From NCBI GenBank assembly GCA_025558095.1, contig JAIVFI010000008.1, positions 434,001-498,000 of the forward strand: a stretch of DNA of 64,000 nt, in the 5' to 3' direction. Within the stretch, counting starts at the first letter, position 1. The number at the start of each line of letters is the position of its first letter. A program made the position numbers and the translations under genes. Below are positions 45,924-62,600 of this stretch, piece after piece. This DNA comes from Hyaloraphidium curvatum SAG 235-1. Its lineage: Eukaryota; Fungi; Monoblepharomycota. Under the pieces are notes generated by a model, which saw only the letters and a program-made list of their open reading frames with translations, ran no database searches and had not been told where the DNA came from.

Positions 45924-48237
45924 TCACTTCTCGGCCACTTCGGTAACCACGTCCGCAGCGACGGTCTGCGCGGGGATGGTGTCCACCTTGACTGGCGTAA
46001 CTTCGCTCTGCGCGACAGCCAAGGCGGGAGCCTCGGACGCCTTCAGGGCCTCCTGGGAGGGCATGGGCATGCCGCTTGCCAGCGTGGCCGTTCGCTGCTT
46101 CCTCTCGAGCGTGGCAACCTTGGACGCTTCCCAGGTGCTTGCCGCCGTGTTCTCGGTAGCGACAACGGGGGCGGGGCCGTAGTAGTTGGTCAAGGTGGCG
46201 GTGCGCTGCGCGGTCTTGAGCTGGTCGCCTTCCGCAGAGGGCTTGGAGCTGACGAGGTCCACATCGGGCAGTTCGACGATGAACAGGGCGAGGACGGCCG
46301 CGACGGCGAAGCAGCAGCCGGCCATGAAGAGGGCCCACGGGATGCCGACATAGTCGCCAAGCGAGGCCCTGAGGCCGGTTATGCCGAAGGTGATGATCAG
46401 CTGCGGGGTAGTAATGAACAAGTTCCTGATGGAGGTGAGGAGAGGGGGGAGAGGGAAGGGAATTGTGTGAGCAATCAGCGGGGGACGGTCGGAGACCAGC
46501 AGAGCAGACTTACATGATACCGAATTGGGTGCCGACATCCATGCCGCCGCCCTCGGCATTATAGCGACCGACGATGGCAAAGGGGAACGAGTTGATGCAG
46601 CTGATGGGAATGGACACGCCGACGGCGACAGCCCAGGCGTACCCAGGAGCGGTGATGAACTGAAAGCGGCAACCGTCAGCAAGCGTAGAGCTCACCCGTG
46701 CGACTTTGAGCTTCACCTTCGACAAAATCATTATGAGCGCCCCCACAGCCAAGCTGATGGAGTAGACAAACTTGACGCGACGCAGGTAGCCGTAGGAGAC
46801 ACCGCCAGCAAGGATCAGCGAGTAGATGATCTGGACCGCGGTGGCAACCATGCCAGTGTAGCCTGCAGCGGACGTCAGCGTCCGGCCATCGTGCGCGTGA
46901 TCGTCGGCCACCCACCGTACTGCTGGTTGCCTGCAGCCGCGTTCTCGGCACCCTGAGAGCCAGCCGGGCAGCCTTCCGTTCCGACAATGCATCCGTCGTA
47001 GACGATCAGCTGGGGATCGGACGGGGTCAGACTTGTCCGAGGCTGACGAAGCGTACAGAGATTCTCACGGCAAACCAAGTCGAACCGACCGGCCACCACG
47101 TGAATAGCGCAGCCCAGGAGAAGAACTGCACCGCACACACGGTCGCGAGCTTGCGATCCATCCTGACGATGTTCTTCATGGCATTCAGGAACGGCGCAAA
47201 GGGCCCGCTCAGCTTGTCCTCCGGATCACGCTGGTGCTGGTTCTCGTGGACCATGAACACGTGCACGCCGGTGAAGAGGATGTTGATGGCGAGCATAGCG
47301 CTGAGAAGCGGGGGCATCGAGGACGGGTTGCCGTCCCAGAGGGCAGACATGAGACCGTATCCAATCATGGCTCCGACACCTTGGAACGAAGCCGCCAGCA
47401 GCTGGATGATGCCCTGCTGCGTGTCGGGGGTCATGTCTGAGCCAATGGCTCGAAGAGGGGTTTGCTGATTGAATTGTCATCAGCGCACGATCCTGCCGAT
47501 CTCAACCCAAAGCACCCACAAGGATGTTGATCGAGAAGTCCAGCAGCACCTCTGACAAAGAAGCGTCGTTAGTGAGGAAGAGGAGACCTGTTGGGGACGG
47601 AACCGACCGGAAACGAAGCCGACAGCCAAGGCCGCGCCGCCGTACAGGTAAGAGAACATGAACACGACCGTGGTGATGATGATCGCAGCGAGGCCGCCAA
47701 GGATGTAGGGCCTGCGCCTTCCGTACTTGCTCTCGGACCGGTCGGAGAGACTGCCGATGATGGGGGCTATGGACCAACGTCAGTCTGGCACGGACACGAG
47801 GCAAGGTGCCACATACCCATGATGAAGCCCGCGATGGGTCCAAAGATCCACACCATGGAGGCCAGCGCACCAGACAGGCCATAGGCTTGCAAGACTTGCC
47901 TGCAGGCAGGGCGGACAGTGTCAGCATACTGTCACCATCCTTCCTTGGCGGGAACTGCACGAGATAATTCCGAACTCGACCTGCCAGATTGACTGGACGC
48001 CAACCCATGGGAGGGCCTGGAATGGTGCGGCCAACCCTTGTCAGCAACGGTCCTCCCTCCACGTGGTCCACCATACCAGGAGCATGAGCTGGAAGGGGTC
48101 TGGACAAGGAGGACGGGCGTGTGAGCTCCTAGCATCGTGGACACGGAGGGGGACCCACTGAGCTTGACACGGCTCCCGCCCATCGCCTCCTCGGGCTGGG
48201 CAACGCCTGCCATGATGGCAGCTTTCGCGTTGTCCAT
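45924..48237 (-). CDS. Sucrose/maltose:H+ symporter-like MFS transporter (SUT/SLC45, GPH family), ~9 exons
   Basis: Spliced: ALPWVGVQSIWQVEFG, VWIFGPIAGFIMAPIIGSLSDRSESKYGRRRPYILGG, LLDFSINILQTPLRAIGSDM, CAVQFFSWAALF, GIMNLFITTPQLI. Confidence 0.88.
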
Positions 48238-48640
48238 TGCTTCGCCCTGGCAGTCGCTTCTGCGGTGTGTGAGGTGCGAAGATTTGTCGCGAATGTTCAC
48301 GGTGCCCCGAACCCCCGGAGGAGTCAGTGAGAGGTCCCCTGAGGTCCCCTGAGTGGCGCAGCCAGGGTGACCGTACCTGTCATCAACGAATCAATCCCGC
48401 CCGACCAGGGTCAGGAGGCCAAAACATTACGTGGGAAACAAAAGAATCCATCTCCAGCTGGTGTTTCGGGTGATTTCTGTCCACGTGCGGGGCTTTGGTT
48501 TGTCAGGTGTGTCCCCCTGTCCCCCAGCTCAGGGTCTCGCGGAGCCTCGCTGAGCAGTCGTTCCTGCGTACCCAGGTGCTGGCCTGTGCCTCAGCGACCC
48601 TCTGCGCGCAGGCGGGACTCTCCACTGCTGCGATACACCC

Positions 48641-51600
48641 ATGCCGGACGCCGCTGTGGGGCCGCAGGGGCCGGCGCGTAGCGTCGAGTTTGTCCTCCCG
48701 TATCGCACGACCTTTGGCGAATCCGTGTGCCTCCTTCGCGCTCCTGAGCCGGTTCCCTTGACCGAGGAAGAGGCAATTTCGGGTAGTGGCGGCCTGGAGG
48801 TTCTGCGCATCTCGGCAACGGGCAATGGAGACGATCAAGGCCTTACGGTCTCGTCGTTGTCTGGATTAGTTCGCTACAAGTACGGACTGTTGAACGATCA
48901 GACTGGCAAGGTGGGGTGATGCGTAGACCTGGGCTGCCGGGTGCAGACGTCCTGATGTTCCTGCTTCCGCAGGTTGTGGCCGTCGAGTTCGGCGATCCCC
49001 GCACCGTCGATCTGGATGCCTTGTCCGCCAGCGGCGCGGTGGCCATCAAGGACTTTTGGCGCCCCATGGGCCGCGACGACAACGCACTCTACAGCTCCTT
49101 CTTTGTCGATGGATGCCTCAGACCGGACCCTTCTACCCAGACGCCCCCGAAAGCTGCCACAGCCAACTCGAGCACCAGGGCGGCGGTGTTCCGCATCCGA
49201 TGCCCGCGCATCGAAACGGGCGATCGCGTTGCGGTCTTTGGCTCGGCGGCCGAATTGGGCAGCTGGGACGCAGCCAAGGCCGTCCCGATGTTCAACCCCG
49301 ATCATCCGCTGTGGCAAACCGCGCCCGTCGCCGTTCCCGAGGGCATCGACCGGATCGAGTACAAGTACCTCGTGCAGAAAGCCGACGGTCAGGTCATCAT
49401 TGAGGATGGAAGCAACCGCGTCCTCTACCTGGCACCGCACACCACCGTGGTGACGGACGAGGGCTTCAGGTTCACGACCAACTGGAGGGGCGCCGGCGTC
49501 GCCATCCCGGTCTTCTCGCTCCGCACCAAGAACTCGTTCGGCGTCGGCGAGTTCATGGACCTCATTCCCATGGTCGATTGGGCCAAAGAGGTCGGCCTCA
49601 AGGTCGTGCAGATCCTGCCAATCAACGACACTGTGGCTACGCACCGCTGGATGGACAGCTACCCATGTATGCCGACTGGGACCGGATGCGGCTGCCGCGC
49701 CTGATGTTCCGTTGTGCAGATGCGGGCATATCTGTGTTTGCGCTGCATCCGCAGTACCTCAACCTGCACGCCATTGGCAACTTGTCGGCCTCGACAACGC
49801 AGCTCATCATCGATTCCAAGGGCAGCTCTTTGAACGAGCTGGAAGAGATCGATTACGAGGAGATGATGAAGCTGAAGAGCAGGTTCTATAAGGTGGGTGA
49901 GCCCCCCCAATCATCGGCGGTTCAACGCTAACGATGGAATGTGGAATGTGTTACGCAGCTGATCTATGATGAAACCAAATCGACATTCCTTTCGGACCCC
50001 GAGTACGTCAAGTGGTTCGCAAGCAACAAAGAATGGCTCCTTCCATGTGAATAGCGCACAATGATGCCCGGTGGGCCGCCTTGACTTACGTGTGCGCTCT
50101 GTCAGATGCGGTGTTTTCCTATCTGAGGGATCTCTACCTGACTCCTGACTTTACGAAGTGGGACAAGTACTCCAAGCCGACGATGGCCGAGATCGAAGAC
50201 CTTGCATCGCCGGAGCGCAATCACTTTGATGACGTCGCAGTTCACTTCTTCATTCAGTACCACCTGCATCGGCAACTCTTGACGGCCGTCAAGTACGCCA
50301 AGAAGAACGGTGTCTGCCTGAAGGGCGACATCCCGAGTTGGTGCAACGCGGACAATCGAGACAAGCCTAGCTAACCATTGCATCCGCAGTCGGCATCTTC
50401 AGGCATTCGGTCGACGCTTGGGTTACGCCACACCTGTTTAACATGGATATGCAGGCTGGCGCCCCGCCGGGTGAGCAAGGCCCAAGTTTGGCTTCGCTAT
50501 CCCCTGGAGCTGACGCGAGTCTTCGACAGATGATTTTGCCACTGATGGACAGAACTGGGGCTTCCCCACGTACAACTGGTGCGTCTCGCGTGTGATCGCT
50601 TTTGCATTCATGCTTACCTCTCGTGGATTCACGCAGGGATGAGATGGCGAAGGACGGATTCCTGTGGTGGCGGCGCCGTCTCTACAAGATGGCCGAGTAC
50701 TTTGATGCGTTCCGCATCGATCACATCCTCGGGTTCTTCAGGATATGGTGCGCGTTGCTCCGTGAAAGCCACTTCGTTCCGCTCACCGCACCCCCAGGCA
50801 AATCCCGACGGATTCCGTGACGGGCCTGATGGGTCGGTTTAATGTCATCTCCTCGTCCCGCTAAAGCGAACTAATCGAAACTACGCGAAAGGTTACTTCA
50901 ATCCGGCGACCCCAATCCACGTTGACGAGATCAAGGGCCGCGGAATTGCCTTCGACTACGACCGCTTCTGCACCCCTTACATCAGGGAATACGTGCTGCG
51001 TGAGCGCTTTGCCCCTGATGTTCTAGGCGACGTAAAGGCGCTCTATCTCGACTACATTGGGGGAGACGGTGATGGCGCCGTGTACAAGCTGAAGGAAGCT
51101 GTGGACACGCAGCGCAAGGCAGCCAATCTCTTGGCCACAACCGAAGACATGAGCATCGAGAAACGGAGCTACAACAACGCTATCAAGAGAGGCCTCTGGT
51201 CGTTGCACTCTGAAGTCCTGTGAGTCCGGATTTGGACCTCTATTGCGCGGCAGGCATGCTGAGGAACGCATGCAGATTCTTCCCTGTGGCAGGCTCCAAC
51301 AACACTCTCTTCCACCCTAGACACTCCCTGCACAAGAGCGCTTCGTTCCAAGGCCTCGATGATCACTCCAAGGGAGCCTTGATGGCGCTGTACAACGATT
51401 ACTGTGCGTCATTACGTCACCCATCTGGCCGTTAGAAGCTCATTGCCGATTTGCAGTCTTCAACCGTCAAGAGGTTCTGTGGAGGGAGAAGGCCATGGTG
51501 AAACTCCCTGCCATCAAGAGCGCCACTCAGATGCTCATCTGTGCTGAAGGTTTGCGTCGGGGAGCCTGTACTATGATTGCCTCAACTGATCCACGTCCTG

Positions 51601-52182
51601 TGGCAGACCTGGGCATGGTGCCGGCATGTGTACCCGGAGTTCTCCAGGAGCTTTCCATCCTCCGTCTTGCCATCCAACGCATGCCGCCAGATCCGAGCAA
51701 GACATTCTGGGATCCCATGGAGACTCCCTATCTATGCGTTGCGTCACCGTCCAGCCATGACATGAGTGGTCTCCGTGGGTGGTGGGAGGAGGACCGTGCA
51801 GTGACGGAGCGCTTCTGGCACGAGATTTTGCGCCGCTTTGATGATGTCCCGTACTACTGCGAGCCGTGGGTTGTGAGGGACATCATTGCAAGCCACCTTT
51901 GGGCACCATGCATGCTTGCCATCTTCCCCATCCAAGATCTGGTTGCTATGGATGGGCGTATCCGGAGGGAAGATCCCCGCGAGGAGCAGATCAATGTGCC
52001 AGCCAATCCCACTCATTACTGGTAAGCTAGCAACCTTACTTGGCGGAACGTAGTGATGACGGATTGATTACGCCAGGCGGTACCGGTTCCACATCAATCT
52101 TGAGGACTTGGTCAAAGACAAGGAGTTCTGCTCCATGGTTGGTGATATGGTGCTCAAGAGCGGTCGCGGACATGCCTACTAG
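48641..52182 (+). CDS. DPE2: 4-alpha-glucanotransferase DPE2-type (two N-terminal CBM20 + GH77), many exons
   Basis: CBM20-like VEFVLPYRTTFGESVCL and VFRIRCP...GDRVAVFGSAAELGSWD...W...IEYKY; GH77 WRGAGVAIPVFSLRT, QILPINDT, LKGDIP, GAPPDDF, GQNWGFP, RIDHILGFFRIW, CAEDLG, SSHDMS, INVPANPTHYWRYR; ends SGRGHAY*. Confidence 0.93.
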
Positions 52183-52339
52183 TCGCTGTTAGGAGAAGAG
52201 GCTGGCATTTATGTTGATAACAGAACACAACTGTTCGCCAGTAAAGGCTTTACTTACCACCCCTAACTTGGCCGCTGTTACCCCATCAGTTTGCTGCTAG
52301 TTTGAAGTTTGTCGTCGTGCATCTTTTTCATTTTCCCCG

Positions 52340-53100
52340 TTTTCTGTCCTTCATGGACAGCTGGCAATGGAGTTGAGGGCATTCTCCTTCTGCCGCCTCA
52401 CTTTGATCGTGGGCTCGAACTCCTTGATGCTAAGAGCCCAGAGCCAGCCAGGTCTCCATGTTCCACTCGCGGCCCAGTGCTTCCAGTCTGGTCTGCAGCT
52501 TCTGGCGCCGCTCTGCATTTGCTCATCAACAGTGGAACAGAAGATGTTGTTCGTCTCCAATATGCTCAGGGTCATGTTTGCACATCCTCTGCTGCACCTC
52601 TTCAAGTCCTTGGTGGTGCCTGCCTGTCTCCACCTCCAGGTCGTTGGTAGAGCAGAGCAGCTTCTGGACGTCCCTCCGGTGCTTCCCACCCGGATAGCCG
52701 GATTAGGGACCGTGCAATGTGCCCTTAGGTCATGTCACACATCCTCCAGAAGTGCAGTTTGTCATTGTTCTTGAGCTTCTGGGCATTGATCTCCTTGAAC
52801 TTGCCCTTCACAAGATTCTCCACAGTCTACTTGGCCCATGAAAAAGTGTCCTTCTCCCACATCTTCCTCCCCTCCTCTCCACCATAGTATACAAGTAGTT
52901 CCCTCAGGAAGACAGCCCAGTTCCAGCACCCCTTCAGTGCCTCGATCTTGAGCTCCTTGTAGAGCAGGTACAATGCAGGGTCAGCTGTTTTGATGCTCGC
53001 ATGAGGAACTTGAGAGCCGACTCATGGTCATGAACTGCAAGAGGGCACTGGCCAGTGATCGCATTCAGACAAGCCAGGGAGGTAGATTTGGGCTGATGAG
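52340..53100 (-). mobile_element. Degenerate 3' part of a non-LTR (LINE) retrotransposon ORF2
   Basis: Interrupted frames read MCKHDPEHIGDEQHLLFHC...GREWNMETW, paralogous to the 58.1-58.8 kb LINE tail. Confidence 0.65.
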
Positions 53101-53149
53101 TGACAGCGCGAAGGGCCATGCATGTCTTTTTGTCCCGGGCTTTCCCCGA

Positions 53150-53580
53150 CAAGGTACTCCTCCTTCGGCATCTCCACAATGAAGAAGGCCCCCAACGGCA
53201 AGGCAAAGGACGAGGATGGGATCCGGCTCGAGTTCGTCAAGTACGGGACTGCAGTACTGAAGCAAGCTGTTGTCAACCTCCTCAACGACGTGCTCAATGG
53301 CGTCAAGATGGATGACTGGGGCCAGACACTGCTGGTGATGCTGCACAAGAAGGGGCCCAAGAACGTGGCTGGCAACTACCGAGGCATCAGCATAGAGAGG
53401 ACGCTGGAGAAGGTCTTCTCCCTGGTCTGGAACGCTCGGCTAGCTCCCTGGGCTGAGTGCAACAAGCTGCTGGAAGGCTCGCAGTTCGGATTCCGTGCAC
53501 GGAGATCAACCCTTCATACAGTGTTCCTTGCCGAGGCACTCTTCTCCTTGGCCAAGGCACGCAAGGAGAAGCTGATCATT
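53150..53580 (+). mobile_element. LINE reverse transcriptase fragment (N-terminal part)
   Basis: KAKDEDGI, LHKKG...NYRGISI...KVF, QFGFRARRST. Confidence 0.85.
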
Positions 53581-53834
53581 ACAGCGGCCCAGCCAGGGGC
53601 AGGTCCGGGTCACCAATACTATTCTATAATGAACGGGTTCCCATATTGGCCCACCGCCTTGCCCTTCGTGTTGTAGAGCTTGAGCTGGAGGTCAGGTTCA
53701 TCCCAGGCTGCTCCCTGATGTCGCGGAGTCAGACCATATGCAGCGTTCATGTTAGCCTGCCTGCCATGCACTGTTGAAACCTATGCATTGCTACGTTGTT
53801 GGGATGGATCATGCACTGGAGGGAATCTTGCAAC

Positions 53835-54036
53835 GAGGGGGAGTGTTGGAATGGATCGCTGCTACGATTCTGTCTCAATAGGGAGTCTTTGGCGTGTGGG
53901 GATACTTGGGTACGACCGGAGGGGTCATCTAGGGACTTGTCATCACAAGGGAATGGACAACGGGTCGATGTGAAACTGTCCCTCTCCCCATCCCGTACAT
54001 CTGAGTTCAGACCCAGTTCAGACCACTGGGGCTACG
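53835..54036 (+). mobile_element. Polypurine tract plus LTR-like segment, copy 1
   Basis: GAGGGGGAG followed by TGTTGG at 53844; 193 bp repeated at 59266-59459. Confidence 0.6.
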
Positions 54037-54039
54037 TCT

Positions 54040-54290
54040 TCCCCACGCCCCATAGCCACTCCAACATGCACATGGTCCTTGCTCCGCCCAGTTGCTGACG
54101 TGAGCTGGTACCCCAGAAGCTTGAAGCTGTCGACCCTCTTCAGCTCCTGGCCCCTATACAGGAGCTTCACACGGTGGGGTATCCTCCTGGCCATCCACTC
54201 TGTCTTGCTGACGTTGATCTCCAGCCCATTGGCACTGGCATATGCACACAAAAGATCCAGCTGCATCTTGGCATGCAGACACCTGCTGTA
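54040..54290 (-). mobile_element. LINE reverse transcriptase fragment (post-catalytic thumb region)
   Basis: QLDLLCAYASANGLEINVSKTEWM...VDSFKLLG. Confidence 0.75.
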
Positions 54291-54569
54291 ACAACCCTCG
54301 TGCGACCAGCTGCGAAGGAGAACAAGCCGCACTGCAAGCCCGTGCCGTGCGACTTCCACTTCCTCGCAATAATGCGAAACCTCTACGACAAGCCCTGGGT
54401 CAAGGAGGCAATGCAAGAGTACGAGCAACTTCAAGCTGGATCCGACAAGTGCAACCGGCTCATCCAGATCATGGCAGCGGTGAACAAGGTCGCGAAGAAC
54501 AAGCTTTGTTCCCCTGGTCGCAGGCGCCCAGAGACAGGTGCGGATGAGGCAGGTGGCGTTCCTAGTGTT

Positions 54570-56135
54570 TGTTGTGTTATTTCCTTCTCCCTAGAGCCGC
54601 CCTCCTAGGTTATTGTCTAGCCAAGATCCACCCATCCATCCAAGTCCAACATCCAACTCCAGGACCAACTCCAACTCCTCCAAACACATCCATCCATCCC
54701 CAGCAACACTCCCCCATTTGGAGGCGAGTGGATCGAGTGGAGTCCCCCACCGCGTGCTCCTCCACGCCCCGGGATTGAGTTCCTCGGGCTGCCTAGGCCA
54801 GGCTCCCTGATGTCATCACATCGCACGTCACACCTCCCCCCAAGCCCGGGCGATCCAATCGCCGTACAAGACTCCCCCAGAGACCATACATGCAAAGAAA
54901 GTACAAGACACAATCCAGATTTACACGTAGAGAAACTCCCCCAGAAACCAAGGAACGGCTGCCCACTAGCCTCAGGCTCATCACGGGCAGAGATTCCCGG
55001 CAGGGTCCGGCTCGCAGAGAACGCTGGCCTCAGGCCCATCACGTACTGGAAGCCGAACCCGAAGCAAGATTCACCACACCAATGCGCGCACGGAAAAGTT
55101 CAAAAGGGGCCGGAGATAAAGGCTTGGTAAAGCCGTCCCCAAGGTTGTTGCCTGACACCACCCGCGCAGTCTCAATGGTTCCATTTTGCACGGTGTCGCG
55201 AACGAGGTGGTACTTGATATCGATGTGCTTCGTTCGCTCATGGAACTTAGGATCACGAGCGAGCTGTTCAGCAGACTTGTTGTCCTCGAAAAGTCGCGTA
55301 GGTGTCGTCCGCGCAAAGCCGAGTTCCTGCAGGATGGAGCGCAGCCAGAGAATGTTGCGAACTGCATGCGCCATAGCAACATACTCGGCTTCCGTAGTAG
55401 ACTGTGCAACGATGGATTGCCGTTTGGTCAGCCAGGCAATGCTGGAGGCACCCATGAGGATGACAAGACCGGTTGTCGACTTGCGGGTCATCACACAGCC
55501 AGCAAAATCGGCATCCGCATATGCGCAGAGATCCAAGCGATCACCAGACGCAGGACGACGACCAAGAACAAGTCCATAGGTGCGGGTGCGGCGCAGGTAG
55601 CGCAAAACATCGCGAAGCGCCTTGATGTGAAGAGGCCCAAAGCTGTTGGCAAAGCGAGAAAGAAAGATAACCGCAAAAGCAATGTCTGGTCGCGTTGTGA
55701 TGGCAATCCAAAGTAGAGAGCCAATCAGGCCCTTGTAGTTGAAACTTTTGACGTCGTCTTGGATCTTCGTTGGCAGGCTGTCAAACACCGCGGGGTCGAA
55801 TGGGCGCAGCCCCTGGAGGGCATCCGGTCGCATTGGCGTGAGAGCAGACTTTGTCTCCTTGCTGGGAACATCACGCGTGAATGCAAATTCGCGGAGGACG
55901 CGGTCGATGTACGCCGTCTGCGACAACGAGATTGTACCGGTGCCGGTGTCGCGACGGATGTGCACGCCCAAGCAGTAAGTGACAGCCCCCAGCGAGTTGA
56001 TGTTGAAATGCTGCTTGAGGCTGGCAAACAACTCATCGATCTCCAGTTGTGAGGTGGCAGCAACCAGCAAGTCGTCCACGTAGACAAAGACGATCATAAT
56101 GCGGCCGGCCGCGAAGCGCACGTAGGCAAGGAAGC
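54570..56135 (-). mobile_element. 3' part of a Ty1/Copia LTR retrotransposon (RT C-terminus, RNase H, PPT, putative 3' LTR ~54570-54832)
   Basis: VYVDDLL, LSQTAYI, IGSLLWIA..TRPDIAFAV, YADADFA, STTEAEYVA, EDNKSA, RTKHIDIKYH; minus-strand GGGGGGAGG followed by TG at 54832. Confidence 0.9.
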
Positions 56136-56139
56136 TTTG

Positions 56140-58060
56140 TGATTGTACCTGGGGACAACAATGGCGTGGCAAAGAAGCTGCCCCATGCATTGGAAGACCT
56201 TGCCGGGGAAATTGTCGTTGTTCTTCTGGGAAGTGGTAAAGCCCGTGATGATCCATCATTTGTACGCACCATGCGCATCAGGAAGCACAAAGTGCTCGCA
56301 TTTTGCGTTGGTTAAAGAAACACAACCCAGATTACGAGGACATTGAGATTGATGAGGCATGCAACCTTCCAGATGATGGGGTGCCTGAGAATCTTCCTGT
56401 ATGCGTTGTTGAGGACCCTGACATTCGTGAAAGCGTAGAGAAGCGGGTTGCCAGTGTAGGAGGTGATGGCAATCTCCATGGCTTCGCAGGCTTTTACGGT
56501 GAAGCAGGCATTGACATGTTGAACATGCTTGGGATCCTGCCGGTCGGTGCTGCAGCAGCAAAAACCCAGACGGAACTCGTTGCAGGCCTTGCTGGCCAGC
56601 CAAGCAGGCCGCATGCATCACCCTCTGGTGGGGAGGAAAGCATCGACAGGCCCAGCAAGGATGCAACAGATGCATCCGGTTCTCCCCTCACCTACGTCAC
56701 ACACAAAGGTTGCTTGGCAATGCGGACAGGCGATGTCCCTTTGAGTGACTATGATGATCGGGCCAAGCTCTTCCGCATGGCATTCCCCTGGATTTTCCCG
56801 TACGGCCGGGGAGCGCCGGATCTGCGCAGTTTGGGTCGCAGAACTCCAATCACGTTTAGGGAAGCTTCTTGGACCTTGATCATGCGCTTTGACCACAGCA
56901 TTGAGGCAGACAGGGCGTTTGGCCTGCTCTGTCTTGCCATGGTGCGCAAGGATGAAGTCATGTTGCAGTCAAAGGTCGAGATGAAGAACTCTTCGCAGGA
57001 AGAATGGGTGCACATGAACAGCCTGTCGGCAGAAGACCTTCGCACCCTGGCAGCATGCGAGGAGAAAATGATGCAGCTGCAGAAGGAGGGCAAGACGGCT
57101 GAAATGGCCTCCGTGTACTCTGGGGTTGCTCCGCATGTGGTGGCCCTCGGCAAAAAGATCAAGGGGCACATCAGGGCTATCCAGCCACGGGTTAGCGGAA
57201 GCAACGCGGCCAGGAAAGGCTTGGAACGCAACATGCGTGCATACATCCATTTCCTGGGCCTCCCGGCATTTTTTGGCACTGTCAACCCATCAGAGATCTA
57301 CAACTCCATGATGGATCTTATGGCCGGATTTGAAGTCAGATGGGGGGACCATTCAACATTTAAATCCAGCTCAGATCGGGCATTCATGGCCGCACGATGG
57401 CCTGCTACAACGGCACGATTCTTCCATTACCTTGTAAACACCTTCATCGACACTAGGGAAGCTTCTTGGACCTTGATCATGCGCTTTGACCACAGCATTA
57501 AGGCAGACAGGGTGTTTCGAAACTGCATCAAAAAAGGTGCAGGTGAAGATGCCGGGGAACAGGAAGAAGGACATCGGAGTGACCAGGAAGCAGATCAAGC
57601 TCACTCCATGCGATGCCATGACTGTGCACTTTTCCCAGGGACAAACACTGACGGGCGCGGTGCTGGACTTGAAGATTGATCCGGGAGCAAGGGGATCGCA
57701 GATCCAGCGCATGTACACCGCGCTTTCGCGATTCACCACGTTGGATGACTTTGTTTTGACAGCACCCATGGATGCCACCACCATCAAGGCGCTACGCAGC
57801 CCCTTTCCGGAGTACGTGGTGGACGAAACGGCTCGATTGGAGGAGATTTGGACCCACACTGAGGCATGGCACCGAGAGTTCTTCGAGGAGTTGATGGCTT
57901 TGTAGTTTGCATTGCATTGGCTTTGTAGTGAATGCATCAAGGGAACGAAACCTCTGGCTCCACATGCAATTCTGCTTCCTCCAAGCTTTGCCTGGTCCCA
58001 TGCACACTCAACAACTCCGAAGGTCAAAAGGCACTGTGCAGCAAGAAGCTTGCTTCTTGC
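56140..58060 (+). mobile_element. Internally deleted Helitron (N-terminal region + Pif1 helicase C-terminus, 3' hairpin)
   Basis: LRWLKKHNPDY, AFPWIFPYGRG, GLPAFFGTVNP; RKQIKLTPCDAMTVHFSQGQTL...MYTALSR; hairpin GCAAGAAGC-TT-GCTTCTTGC at 58041-58060. Confidence 0.82.
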
Positions 58061-58130
58061 CCTATGCACTCATTTTAATGTGCAACTCAAGCCCTGCTAT
58101 ACAAGCTTGGCTCTTATACGATGTGTATCA

Positions 58131-58825
58131 TTAGTAGATTGCTATCGCATCGATGTTGTCCTCAGTAACGTCTCTCTGTTCATCCATCCCTCTCAAAGCA
58201 GGCATTGCACGTCTTGCCTTGAATGCCTTATGAATAAATGTGCCGGCGGCCTCCAAGATCCGTCTCCTCCGCCAGAAGGTCTCCTTCTCCTCGCAGAATT
58301 TCACCTCTTCGTCGTTCCTCAACATCCATCTGACCGTCTCCAGGTTCCAGCGTCGCCCAAGCTCTCTGGTCCGGGCTTGAAGAATCTCCCGCTCGTCGTC
58401 GTACGCAGAGCAGTGAAACAGAAGGTGCATCTCGTCCTCGATCTGATCCAAATGGTGGGGGAAAGTCCGCACACAGAGTCTGATGCCTTGTTGTCGCTGC
58501 GTTTCCACGTTGAGCCCGTGGGTGCTGGTGAGCAGTCGGTTCAAAGAGGTGCGCAGGTCAATGTGATCCATGAGCAGGGTCTCGCACAGTCCAAAGCCCA
58601 TCCCCGCAATCCTCCAGAACCGTACTTTCCCCGTTATCCACCACCTGTGTAGCGCAGATCTCCCGGAATCGTCTCTTGATCGCGGTCTCGATGTCCTCGG
58701 TTGACCAGAACGACTTCCCCTCATCCCATGCTCGCGTTCCCTCCTTGAAGTAGAACTCGAGTAAGCTGCAGATGCTATCCGTCCAGGCGCTGTGAACAGG
58801 AGCAGCGCGAGTCCCCGGTCGTCCT
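58131..58825 (-). mobile_element. Frameshifted 3' end of a LINE ORF2 with Cys/His domain
   Basis: RLLTSTHGLNVET...RLC...IEDEMHLLFHCSAY. Confidence 0.75.
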
Positions 58826-58827
58826 GT

Positions 58828-58983
58828 CACATCCGTGGGTTCCTTGGATTCAGATCGGCAGGATCGTGCGCTGATGACAATTCAATCATGTTTGAAATCA
58901 GCAAACCCCTCTTCAAGCCATTGGCTCAGACATGACTCCTGACACGCAGCAGGACATCATCCAGCTGCTGGTGGCGTCGTCCA
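58828..58983 (+). pseudogene. Intron-containing fragment of the SUT-like transporter gene
   Basis: Reverse complement of ~47382-47527 (gagatcggcaggatcgtgcgctgatgacaattcaatc...ccattggctcagacatgac...catcatccagctgctgg). Confidence 0.88.
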
Positions 58984-59265
58984 TGGTGTTTGTAGATTTC
59001 ACAAAGGCTTTTGACACGGTGGAGCGCCCCAGGTTATGGCAGAAGCTGGAGGAGATGGGAGTACCCAAACTGGTTGTTGACATGTTCGAGATGGCGTTCG
59101 GGCGCGTGTGGGGACGGCTCCGGGATGAAGACGGGACCAAGTCAGACTTCATAAAGTTCCTGACCGGAGTGAAGCAGGGGGACCCTCTCTCGTTGCTGTT
59201 CTTCATCTTGTTCATCAACGACATCACTGCTTTCATGGAGGCCAATGGTGCAAAGGGGATGGATC
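58983..59265 (+). mobile_element. LINE reverse transcriptase fragment (central part)
   Basis: VFVDFTKAFDTV, GVKQGDPLSLLFFILFIND. Confidence 0.88.
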
Positions 59266-59459
59266 TGTTGGAATGGATTGTTGCTACGATTCTGTATCAA
59301 TAGGGAGTCTATTGGCGTGTGGGGATACTTGGGCACGACCGGAGGGGTCATCTAGGGACTTGTCATCACAAGGGAATGGACGACGGGTCAACGTGAAACT
59401 GTCCCTCTCCCCATCCCGTCCATCTGAGTTCAGACCCGGTTCAGACCACTGGGGCTACG
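59266..59459 (+). repeat. LTR-like segment, copy 2
   Basis: Starts TGTTGG; closely matches 53844-54036. Confidence 0.8.
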
Positions 59460-59665
59460 AAAAAGGGACTCCGCGCGCGGTTTGCGATTCACGGCGCATA
59501 GGTGCGCCAACCGGGGCTGACGGGCGCATAGTTTGGCGGCATTGCGCGCAGAGTTTGAGCTGGCCGGCGCATAGAGCCTGACCACCAAGCGCGAACACTG
59601 GAACCAGAACACCGGACCACAGAGTCACCGAGAATTTCCGAGGAAATTGGGGAGATTGGTTCTCT

Positions 59666-62600
59666 TCAAACTTTGCGACAAAAGAACAGCAGTTCCGCTC
59701 TACCGCGACCGCCCATCTTGAAGCGCTCTTCCGCGGTCAGACCCTCCCAAACCGCCGGCTCGTTGGTAGCAGCGTCCAAGAAAGGGTATATCTGGCTCCC
59801 GTTCCACTGCCACACCTTTCCGTCCGGTCCGATCCATCGCGCCGCTCCTCGCTTGTTGTTGCCGTAGAGAGTTGCAACCCAGTGCCACTCGGTGCCGCCG
59901 ATGTTGATGGTGGAAGGGATGTCCAGGGCGGCTTCGATGGCAAAGACGAGCAGCGGCACAGGAATGTTGCCCAAGAGACTGAAGTCTCCTTCACCGCAGC
60001 TCCCGCGGCAGGCACCCCGTCGAGGCGGAAGTCTGTGCCAAGCCGCCCGCATGGCCCCCTTCCAAAGGCTCCATTCACCGGCGGCGATGTCCAGCACCGG
60101 CAAATTGCGCATCGATAGTTTGGTCGGCGATGAATCCGTCTCGTGATTGCACTGAGCCCTCACGCCGAAACTCCGTCCAACATACGCGAACAGAACGCCG
60201 GCTGCCGCCTTGAACGTCGTCGTCGTGCTGCGATCGCGGAGGCTCTCCGCCACCTCGTAAGCGAGCATGTCTCTTGCGCGGTTGAGGTCCGGCGAGGGCG
60301 GAAACTCCCCGTTTTGGGCGTAGTTCAAAAAGGCGCCGGCCACGTCCGAATCCTTTGCAATGAGCGGGCCAAGAAGAGACGGTGGGTCGTCGGGGTAGAT
60401 GGCTCGGTACACGGCGGGCAGGATGGCGGCGATCGCATCGGCCCAAGCGTAAACCGATGGATGGAGCTCCGGATCCTTGCTGTACGAAGCAGGCCGTTTC
60501 GCCTTGATCGGAGAAGACATGGGAGTCGAGGGAAGGGCAAACGTCGTCGCGGGTGTGTTGGGTGTGTTGGGTGTTGAACTCGCAGGTGTCTCCTGTGTCT
60601 TTGGGTTTCGACTTCGTGACGGGTTGGCTGGCGCGTTGGCCTCGAGGCTTCGGGTGGCGCTGTTGTCCGAGCGGCGAGCCTTCTTGGGAGCCGTCGTGTC
60701 GTCGTCGGAACTGCGACCCGAGTTCGTGGGCCCGGGGTTCTTGCGCCCTTTTTGCAGCGCTTTGGGCTTGTTTGAAGGCCGGCCTGGATTTTGCCGCGAA
60801 TTCGTCGACTCGATGTTCGTGGCCTCCTCGTCCTCCCCGCCTTCTTCTCCTCCCCCATCGTCTTCCACTGCGCCGAGAGATGGTGAAAATCCTCCCTCCT
60901 CCCCGTGTGCCGGTTCGAACTCTGCCTCCGGGCCCTTGTTCACAGGGGCATTGTTAAAAAGGTCTTCCTCCATGGGCTGATCCACAGAAGCATCCTCCAC
61001 AGGGGCTTCCTCCACAGAAGCATCCTCCACAGGGGCTTCCTCCACAGAAGCATCCTCCACAGGGGCTTCCTCCACAGAGTCTTCCTCCATAGCGTCTCCG
61101 CCTTCCGAAGTGTGCTGCGGTTCAGGGTCGGCGTCTCCACCCTCGTCCGCCTCGTCTTCACCTTCTTCCACCTCGTCGGCGTCGAATTGTAGGTCTGTCT
61201 GCGGTTTCCGGGCCTCCTCTTCCCAGGTAGAAAAGGGGCCGCTGTGCTGGAACAAGTCGGCAGCAAACCAGTGCTTGCACCGATGCGGGTTGGAACCGAG
61301 GCGACAGCTCGACACGCTGCACGGCCGACGAAGTTCCGACATGTCGACGACGGCAACACTGCCATCGGACCTGCGCACCTCGAAAACACCGTCTTGCTGT
61401 GTTGATTTCACGTGCCCCCTCTCCCACAGCCGTGTGCCCTCTTCGGACGCCTCCGCGACCTTGGGGTGCACATGACCGCGGTGATCCGTGAGCAGGCTGT
61501 AGGCCCAGAATCGGTCCAGCTTGACGATGGCCGTGGCAATATGGAAGTTGCCGCGCAAAATCACGCCGTCGATGACCTTCCAAACGATTTCGACGTGGTT
61601 GTTGGTGAAGCAATCGCCGAGGTCGACATCGTCCGGGAGCAAATAATCGGCCACCAGGGGCGCCCAGGTGTCGTTGAACCAGTCCTTTTCCACGTAGATC
61701 GATTGGCTGGCCACAATCTGCTTCTTCACCTCCACGGTGCGATCCGATGCCGCCTTTTCCACGAGGTCCGGCACCGTCCGCTCCAAAAAGGTCTTCTTGC
61801 CCGACGCCCAAGCATCCTCGTCCTTGGCTTCCGCGCAGAGCTGCCTGAACTTTTCAGCGGTGGCCGTCCGTACGTTTCTGGGAATGATCGAGTCCGGAAT
61901 CGCATCCTCTTCGTCCACGGCGGCGATGGGTTGCTTCTTCTTGCCTTCCCTGCTTTTACCGGCGCGCCGTTGGAAGGCCTGCTTGATGTGGAAGTAGCAG
62001 AGTCGGTAGAATGTTCCTTGACCCACACCAAACACGTCCTGGAGGGCACCGAGTTCGGCATACGACTTGTCCAGGGTCATGCAACGGGGCCGCCAATCCA
62101 TAGCCGCCGCCTCCACCTGGGGCCGCCTTCCTCGGAGGAGGGCCGGCCACGTCGATTCGTCCTGGTGTTCCAAGAGCCCGCGCGCAAACGATATGACGCG
62201 TGCGAGAAACCACTCCAGGAACCTCTTCAGCGTGGGCCGCCGGATATTGGTGGAAAACAGGAACGCGAGGGGTTTGGCACGCCGACCGACCACGTCGAAA
62301 GCCACCAGTCCAGTAATGGGCAGCTTCTGGATGTTCTTGCGCCGCCAGGATGAATCGATCCCGACAATGCTCCCGTAGACGATGGCAAACACGAGTCCGA
62401 CCGTATCGGTGAAGGCGTAGGAAAAAGAGGCTCCGATGGATTCCGACCCCTCCTCCAGGCCGACCAGATACACGTTTTGAGGCCTTTCCGCGGCGAGCTT
62501 CCTCAACACGCTGAGCGAGGCAGGTCCGAACATGGCACGTCGCGCCTGTCTGGCGATGCTCTTAAGGGTGCCGTCCGGAATGCCACCCCATTTGGTCACG

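Follow-up and report, generated by a model that had tools for sequence, protein, structure and literature searches.

Can a fungus assimilate maltose with parts other than the sugar-porter permease and GH13 maltase of the textbook yeast MAL system? The question is raised by a locus of Hyaloraphidium curvatum SAG 235-1 at which the gene for a SUT-like transporter stands head-to-head with the gene for a DPE2-type 4-alpha-glucanotransferase, within the window analysed here (the whole stretch of 64,000 nucleotides, contig C8:434001-498000 of genome G000; positions below are those of the window unless another contig is named). An earlier note on this DNA had proposed that the transporter imports maltose and that the enzyme channels half of its glucose into glycogen or another glucan. 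With a probability of roughly 0.55, we read the two genes as a divergent unit for the assimilation of alpha-1,4-glucosides, most likely maltose or short maltodextrins, through import and a cytosolic DPE2. Genomic context supports this reading: transporters of the same clade lie beside, or are fused to, alpha-glucan enzymes in four of the five other annotated zoosporic-fungal genomes. Judging by this locus and the related ones, fungi of early-diverging lineages may use other parts for maltose than yeasts do.

The assembly of H. curvatum comprises 31.9 Mb in 55 contigs, with a GC content near 0.62 and short GT..AG introns. The transporter gene lies on the minus strand (45924..48237; ATG 48237, stop ending 45924) and encodes 571 aa in 11 exons (48237-48159, 48099-48077, 48016-47961, 47899-47817, 47766-47608, 47551-47520, 47464-47069, 47009-46916, 46862-46717, 46659-46514, and 46425-45924) separated by 10 introns. 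Once spliced and translated, it matches the NCBI protein P0033 (571 aa) at every residue. On the plus strand, the DPE2-type gene (48641..52182; ATG 48641, stop ending 52182) encodes 933 aa in 14 exons (48641-48910, 48973-49666, 49720-49892, 49959-50046, 50106-50336, 50390-50470, 50530-50578, 50637-50747, 50798-50832, 50892-51219, 51276-51403, 51457-51549, 51607-52021, and 52077-52182), and its 13 introns, as modelled, are all GT..AG and 50-66 nt long. The RNA evidence comes from one small run, X1 (the only public run with this DNA), in the form of contigs, which show presence and splicing, not level or regulation. Six transporter introns are spliced out as modelled in these contigs, and the boundary of exon 9, with intron 46660-46716, was set from the RNA; for DPE2, introns 49667-49719 and 50337-50389 were seen spliced out. 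Since the X1 contigs carry introns of both genes removed as modelled, both genes are transcribed.

From ATG to ATG, the divergent spacer measures 403 bp (48238..48640). At least 48238-48312 is 5' untranslated region of the transporter, as seen in a spliced RNA contig of this gene (48159-48312), and a second RNA contig, with its strand not resolved, covers 48387-48537. Between the two contigs, the 10-mer GAGGTCCCCT occurs in two tandem copies (48331-48350), which may be a regulatory element or merely the cause of the contig break there. The upstream regions of this transporter and of its paralogue on contig C10 showed no similarity when compared, and we thus propose no common promoter element. 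The start codons and strands given in the earlier note proved exact in view of the spliced models, the identity with P0033, and the RNA joints, and its intergenic region of about 400 bp agrees with the spacer measured here.

What kind of transporter is encoded? P0033 carries PF13347 (MFS_2) and PF07690 in the precomputed Pfam column, and the paralogue P0001 passes PF13347 with 41.7 bits (cut-off of 27). Single transporter exons gave no match in Pfam, and a PDB search with exon 7 returned nothing useful; the family assignment was made through full-length relatives from a representative search with exon 7 (27 matches, the best being P0001 with 86% identity). The nearest solved relatives of P0033 are AtSUC1 (PDB 8bb6, E 3e-19, residues 34-462) and human SLC45A4, and the alignment with a Pyrus SUT runs end to end (25% identity, E 9e-26). 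Neither P0033 (83.6 bits) nor P0001 (88.4 bits) came near the TIGR01301 (GPH_sucrose) cut-off of 511 bits; both are on a level with a bacterial "maltose transporter" (101 bits), and a plant SUT control scored 771 bits. We performed a phylogenetic analysis of 48 sequences (quick IQ-TREE search, with support from the Shimodaira-Hasegawa-like approximate likelihood ratio test, SH-aLRT, only; Schizosaccharomyces pombe Sut1 and SLC45 sequences left out). Both Hyaloraphidium copies fell within a 12-member zoosporic-fungal clade (SH-aLRT 98), whose other members are from Gaertneriomyces, Borealophlyctis, Blastocladiella, Allomyces, Gorgonomyces, and Boothiomyces as well as from metagenomes, and whose sister is a protist clade with Sphaeroforma and Mucochytrium. 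Among the 48 sequences of the tree, the transporter clade includes no organisms other than zoosporic fungi and some few protists. This fungal and protist group is nearer to plant SUT than to the bacterial clade, which is set apart at SH-aLRT 100, and the bacterial homologues annotated as maltose/maltooligosaccharide transporters of the MFS share 25-30% identity with P0033. The gain of a bacterial-type maltose transporter by transfer was rejected, as the clade groups with eukaryotic sequences. Hence, the SUT/SLC45 identity claimed in the earlier note holds in that AtSUC1 and SLC45A4 are the nearest solved relatives, with the reservation that the relationship is distant, far below the TIGR01301 cut-off, and in a separate clade.

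The key residues of the transport mechanism were compared using AtSUC1 numbering, mapped by motif through the Pyrus SUT. In AtSUC1, Asp152 of M4 is a buried proton donor/acceptor that is strictly conserved in SUCs (PMC10281868). Its equivalent is kept: the Asp of LLDFSIN aligns with that of plant ILDVANN in all 11 clade members from eukaryotes, and bacterial relatives have it as well. The equivalent of Gln50 in M1, which pairs with Asp152, is a Glu (IWQVE in P0033 for plant GWALQ), also found in nine of the 10 other aligned eukaryotic clade members, with the Sphaeroforma sequence gapped there, and Asn155 is replaced by Ile across the clade. The residues of SUC1 that contact the glucosyl unit (equivalents of Trp47, Gly75, Asp152, and Asn156) are kept in the clade. 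Judged by its sequence, the transporter is not a canonical SUT; it reads as a glucoside carrier coupled to protons, from a SUT-related clade of its own. Because the buried proton-site Asp is kept, it is probably a proton symporter taking sugar into the cytosol.

A single head-to-head pair cannot by itself show more than chance, and we examined the neighbours of this clade in other genomes. In Gorgonomyces haynaldii, the first copy and a GH14 beta-amylase gene with a CBM20 stand head-to-head, 287 bp apart, with a second GH14+CBM20 gene next to them. The second copy (P0028, L011:1551-4317, minus strand) unites a GH15-like enzyme and the transporter in a single open frame; the junction is a short linker with neither a stop nor a Met in between, suggesting an apparent natural enzyme-transporter fusion. 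This fusion lies within ~8 kb of the two beta-amylase+CBM20 genes and of the other transporter copy. In Gaertneriomyces semiglobifer, the transporter is head-to-head with a GH14+CBM20 enzyme whose N-terminus, judged by eye, is signal-peptide-like. Blastocladiella emersonii and Allomyces javanicus have it head-to-head with a GH15-like protein without signal peptide, an orthologue of the enzyme that is fused to the transporter in Gorgonomyces (49% identity, E 5e-158). No alpha-glucan enzyme adjoined the transporter at the loci of Boothiomyces and Sphaeroforma, or on the metagenomic and ENA contigs with transporter relatives. As a rough guide, some 15-20 alpha-glucan-active loci among ~10^4 genes (the gene number being estimated from gene density) give an expected chance of ~0.3-0.4% for an alpha-glucan gene at a given flank, and at least three separate associations were observed, with different enzyme families and one of them a fusion. 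Since four of five genomes show such enzymes beside or fused to the clade, chance is an unlikely explanation for its associations as a whole. The partner appears to be interchangeable among lineages, with beta-amylase predicted outside the cell and a GH15-like enzyme or DPE2 inside. The context of the orthologues (beta-amylase+CBM20 in two chytrids, the GH15-like enzyme in blastoclads and one chytrid) lends support to the proposal that imported maltose is passed to a GH77 amylomaltase; the pairing of SUT with DPE2 itself was seen in none of the relatives that could be reached.

The identity of these partners also bears on the substrate. The GH15 family includes trehalases, so a GH15-like partner alone does not point to maltose. 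The nearest characterised relatives (AtSUC1) carry sucrose, and the clade-wide changes at Gln50 and Asn155 make the binding site unlike that of SUC1. Even a non-sugar has a precedent, SLC45A4 being reported as a polyamine transporter (PMC12507699). The substrate could accordingly be another alpha-glucoside, such as sucrose or trehalose, or no sugar at all, and the link to DPE2 indirect. We regard this as quite unlikely, however, given that the glucosyl-contact residues are retained, that the Gorgonomyces cluster unites the GH15-like fusion with two beta-amylases in ~8 kb, and that beta-amylase is the head-to-head partner in two genomes. The product of beta-amylase is maltose only. Furthermore, DPE2 is maltose-specific among GH77 enzymes (bioRxiv 10.64898/2026.09.25.754361). 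Because the clade sits beside both the maltose-making beta-amylase and the maltose-consuming DPE2, a symporter of maltose or short maltodextrins would be the simplest reading of its function.

Is the partner in H. curvatum a genuine DPE2? The enzyme was searched exon by exon, and the joined 933-aa model was compared only by local tblastn with the loci collected for this analysis. PF02446 (GH77) matched in four blocks over the exons (profile positions 1-42, 128-207, 252-289, and 327-456), and exons 9-12 (584 nt, ~195 aa) fall between profile positions 289 and 327, corresponding to an insertion of ~155 aa. The spliced protein contains FRIDH at 554, AEDLG at 759, and SSHD at 809, which we take to be the nucleophile, acid/base, and transition-state motifs of GH77 catalysis. 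A CBM20 lies in exon 2 (49180..49443, plus strand; PF00686 57.6 bits with a cut-off of 23.3, residues 92-176 of the open reading frame (ORF) 48916-49704) and was recovered in the whole-genome scan with 60 bits (C8:483189-483443). The first-CBM20 position is taken by a degenerate N-terminal module encoded by exon 1 (48641..48910, plus strand), which Pfam did not recognise even at E<=1; in a local tblastn against L032, its residues from 12 on could be aligned with the start of a CBM20-GH77 protein from bacteria. An intron separates the two modules, and no signal peptide was found, the N-terminus opening directly with the first module. DPE2 has been defined by two N-terminal CBM20 and a GH77 domain broken by ~150 aa (PMC3429525). 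The predicted architecture matches this definition in the interrupted GH77 domain and the second CBM20, with a first module that is a putative CBM20 not recognised by Pfam, and the identification of a DPE2-type enzyme in the earlier note is borne out by these domains.

DPE2 is a cytosolic maltose-metabolising enzyme in plants and many protists, and both DPE2 and beta-amylase are absent from most fungi (bioRxiv 10.64898/2026.09.25.754361); GH77 was found in only one of 103 fungal proteomes, that of a chytrid (PMC3652786). A word-based search with a 262-aa ORF of the gene returned fragments of at most 458 aa, mostly of Bacteroidota CBM20-GH77 proteins, and the two that were checked are on bacterial contigs. 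These many matches fit the reported transfer of DPE2 from eukaryotes to Bacteroidetes (PMC3429525). Scanning metagenomes with exon 2 of DPE2 turned up no relative.

Which other enzymes could supply or consume maltose in this fungus? No GH14 was detected in the H. curvatum genome, and no orthologue of the GH15-like partner was found with the Blastocladiella protein as query; DPE2 holds here the head-to-head position that these partners hold elsewhere. Contig C6 carries a full-length GH13 ORF that is alpha-glucosidase/oligo-1,6-glucosidase-like (C6:685586-687310, L033:1086-2810; 575 aa, PF00128 442 bits), intron-free amid an intron-rich genome and without signal peptide. Going by these features, it is a possible conventional maltase that may have been gained by transfer. 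The idea that DPE2 acts here instead of a maltase was consequently too strong; the contrast with MAL drawn in the earlier note stands at the locus, where an MFS_2 permease and a GH77 enzyme replace sugar porter and GH13, and may not hold for the genome, given the C6 candidate. A second GH77 gene (C33:231089-232755, minus strand) has contiguous profile coverage without the DPE2 insertion and is DPE1/MalQ-like, and the only other CBM20 of the genome (C35:302523-302738) is in an ORF without further recognised domain. In addition, a GH15 match on contig C14 (C14:59776-61205) is broken by several in-frame TGA stops and may be a pseudogene or consist of exons in different frames. The transporter paralogue P0001 (C10:67069-69352, minus strand; L023) is 83% identical to P0033 and maps to C10 at 95-99%.

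Several observations weigh against a functional maltose pair. GH77 is beside the transporter in none of the five other fungal genomes, and the adjacency of SUT and DPE2, sought in relatives as the earlier note had suggested, was seen nowhere else among those that could be reached; the conserved feature is that an alpha-glucan enzyme of one kind or another is the partner. In the sole eukaryotic relative of DPE2 that could be reached (L029, 67% identity), an HMGL-like gene lies upstream, and the part of the contig that was read carries no transporter. Downstream of the C10 paralogue lies an ankyrin-repeat gene, and no glucan enzyme could be recognised within ~15 kb of this copy. As H. curvatum is without beta-amylase, no secreted maltose-forming enzyme has been identified, and with a cytosolic-looking GH13 on C6, DPE2 is possibly not the sole maltose route. 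Elsewhere in eukaryotes, DPE2 serves the turnover of the cell's own glycogen or starch (bioRxiv 10.64898/2026.09.25.754361), and S. pombe does not need Sut1 to grow on maltose (PMC3818258).

Some of these points, namely the DPE2 adjacency found in none of the relatives reached and the C10 paralogue without a glucan-enzyme neighbour, would be expected if the two genes were chance neighbours. DPE2 would then act only on maltose or maltodextrin from the fungus's own glycogen, as an ancestral eukaryotic pathway that was kept, and the transporter would be independent of it. Head-to-head pairs are indeed frequent in the compact H. curvatum genome, the pair borders a transposon-rich stretch where gene order may be reshuffled, and DPE2 is part of cytosolic glycogen/starch catabolism in protists (bioRxiv 10.64898/2026.09.25.754361). 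Nevertheless, because the clade is linked to alpha-glucan enzymes in four other genomes, with an in-frame fusion included, a chance pairing with the genome's one maltose-specific enzyme is improbable. Moreover, H. curvatum has no beta-amylase, the enzyme that usually supplies DPE2 with maltose from within the cell. We therefore consider coincidence an unlikely account of the pair. Taken together, the gene identities and arrangement given in the earlier note were right and its functional idea is partly supported: judging from sequence and genomic context, the two genes probably make up a functional unit for maltose uptake, of an unconventional kind, and one instance of a wider coupling between this clade and alpha-glucan enzymes.

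In which membrane would such a transporter sit? By analogy with the plant MEX1-DPE2 system, it could be placed in a vacuole or lysosome-like compartment, where it would export the maltose of luminal amylolysis, for example from glycogen autophagy, to DPE2. The logic of a maltose exporter feeding a cytosolic DPE2 is established in plants (bioRxiv 10.64898/2026.09.25.754361), and organellar SUT/SLC45 members are described, such as the vacuolar SUT4-type and melanosomal SLC45A2 (PMC6935173, PMC7927184). Nor was a secreted enzyme that forms maltose identified in H. curvatum, which would also agree with an internal membrane. On the other hand, the partner beta-amylases of Gaertneriomyces and Gorgonomyces are signal-peptide-like at the N-terminus and carry starch-binding modules, which fits extracellular starch, even if a signal peptide is compatible with vacuolar targeting too. 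An internal membrane seems very unlikely to us on this balance.

For a maltose-assimilation unit at the cell surface, the following mechanism can be proposed. The SUT-like transporter would bring maltose or a short maltodextrin into the cytosol together with protons. DPE2, presumably cytosolic since it has no signal peptide and equipped with one recognised and one putative starch-binding module, would take up the imported maltose, hand one of its glucosyl units to a glucan, presumably glycogen, and leave the second as free glucose. The divergent arrangement might allow the two genes to be regulated together. More tentatively, the pair may belong to an ancient alpha-glucoside uptake module of zoosporic fungi, a possibility that we hold at less than even odds. 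In such a module, the SUT-like clade would have had its partner swapped among a secreted beta-amylase, an intracellular GH15-like glucosidase (once fused to the cytosolic N-terminus of the transporter), and DPE2, and Hyaloraphidium would feed imported maltose into glycogen through DPE2 in the manner of plants or amoebae, a route lost in Dikarya. We found no description of a coupling between this clade and alpha-glucan enzymes in the literature searched on chytrids, beta-amylase, maltose, GH77, and SLC45, and it is apparently undescribed so far in zoosporic fungi. If true, it would mean that sugar-utilisation gene pairs were put together more than once in fungi, and it would give functional work a starting point both for this uncharacterised clade of transporters and for DPE2, so rare in fungi. 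With the Gorgonomyces fusion, the coupling of transport to hydrolysis could be studied directly by experiment.

The surroundings of the pair are those of a boundary. At DPE2, a housekeeping block gives way to a transposon-rich stretch, in keeping with the block-edge position given in the earlier note. No regulator domain was recognised in the flanking ORFs of the pair, those of the right flank being transposon remnants. To the right of DPE2, the region 52200-62600 has a lower GC content and is crowded with remnants of mobile elements, including RVT_1 (53122-53676), RVT_2 (55039-56259), Helitron_like_N (56303-57679), and a weak MULE match (59666-62599). Inside this stretch, a transporter fragment of 28 residues (58899-58982, plus strand) corresponds to the start of exon 7 and follows a sequence resembling the end of intron 6. 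It is 79% identical to P0001, yet closer to the C8 copy (AIGSDM), and the reverse-transcriptase-like motif FVDFTKAFDTV stands immediately after it.

How does the pair compare with known systems? The transporter shares with plant SUC/SUT and with S. pombe Sut1 the MFS_2/GPH fold, a full-length alignment, the GRRRP motif, and the proton-site Asp of M4; Sut1 has been reported to carry maltose in a heterologous host (Reinders and Ward 2001, cited by PMC3818258). Unlike plant SUC/SUT, it reaches 84 bits where TIGR01301 asks for 511, belongs to its own clade, has Glu for Gln50 and Ile for Asn155, and bears a long non-conserved C-terminal tail. The enzyme resembles the DPE2 of plants and protists in its N-terminal starch-binding modules, the first of them putative, the ~155-aa interruption of GH77, the catalytic motifs, the absence of a signal peptide, and the inter-module intron. 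It differs in a first module that Pfam does not recognise as CBM20 and in being hosted by a fungus, and its partner is a permease gene, whereas that of plant DPE2 is the plastid exporter MEX1. Bacterial MalQ systems offer a similar logic, as there too a GH77 transferase handles imported maltose or maltodextrin, as proposed here, and the MFS transporters are homologous (25-30% identity). However, the H. curvatum enzyme is DPE2-type and not MalQ-type, the genes form a divergent pair and not an operon, and the transporter clades are split (SH-aLRT 100). With yeast MAL loci, the pair has in common a divergent transporter and enzyme for a disaccharide and, in the proposed logic, import followed by intracellular processing. 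In contrast to MAL, no regulator gene (Zn-cluster activator) was recognised in the H. curvatum flanks, the permease is of the MFS_2/GPH type and not a sugar porter (PF00083), the enzyme is a GH77 transferase and not a GH13 hydrolase, and half of the glucose would pass to a glucan instead of being released.

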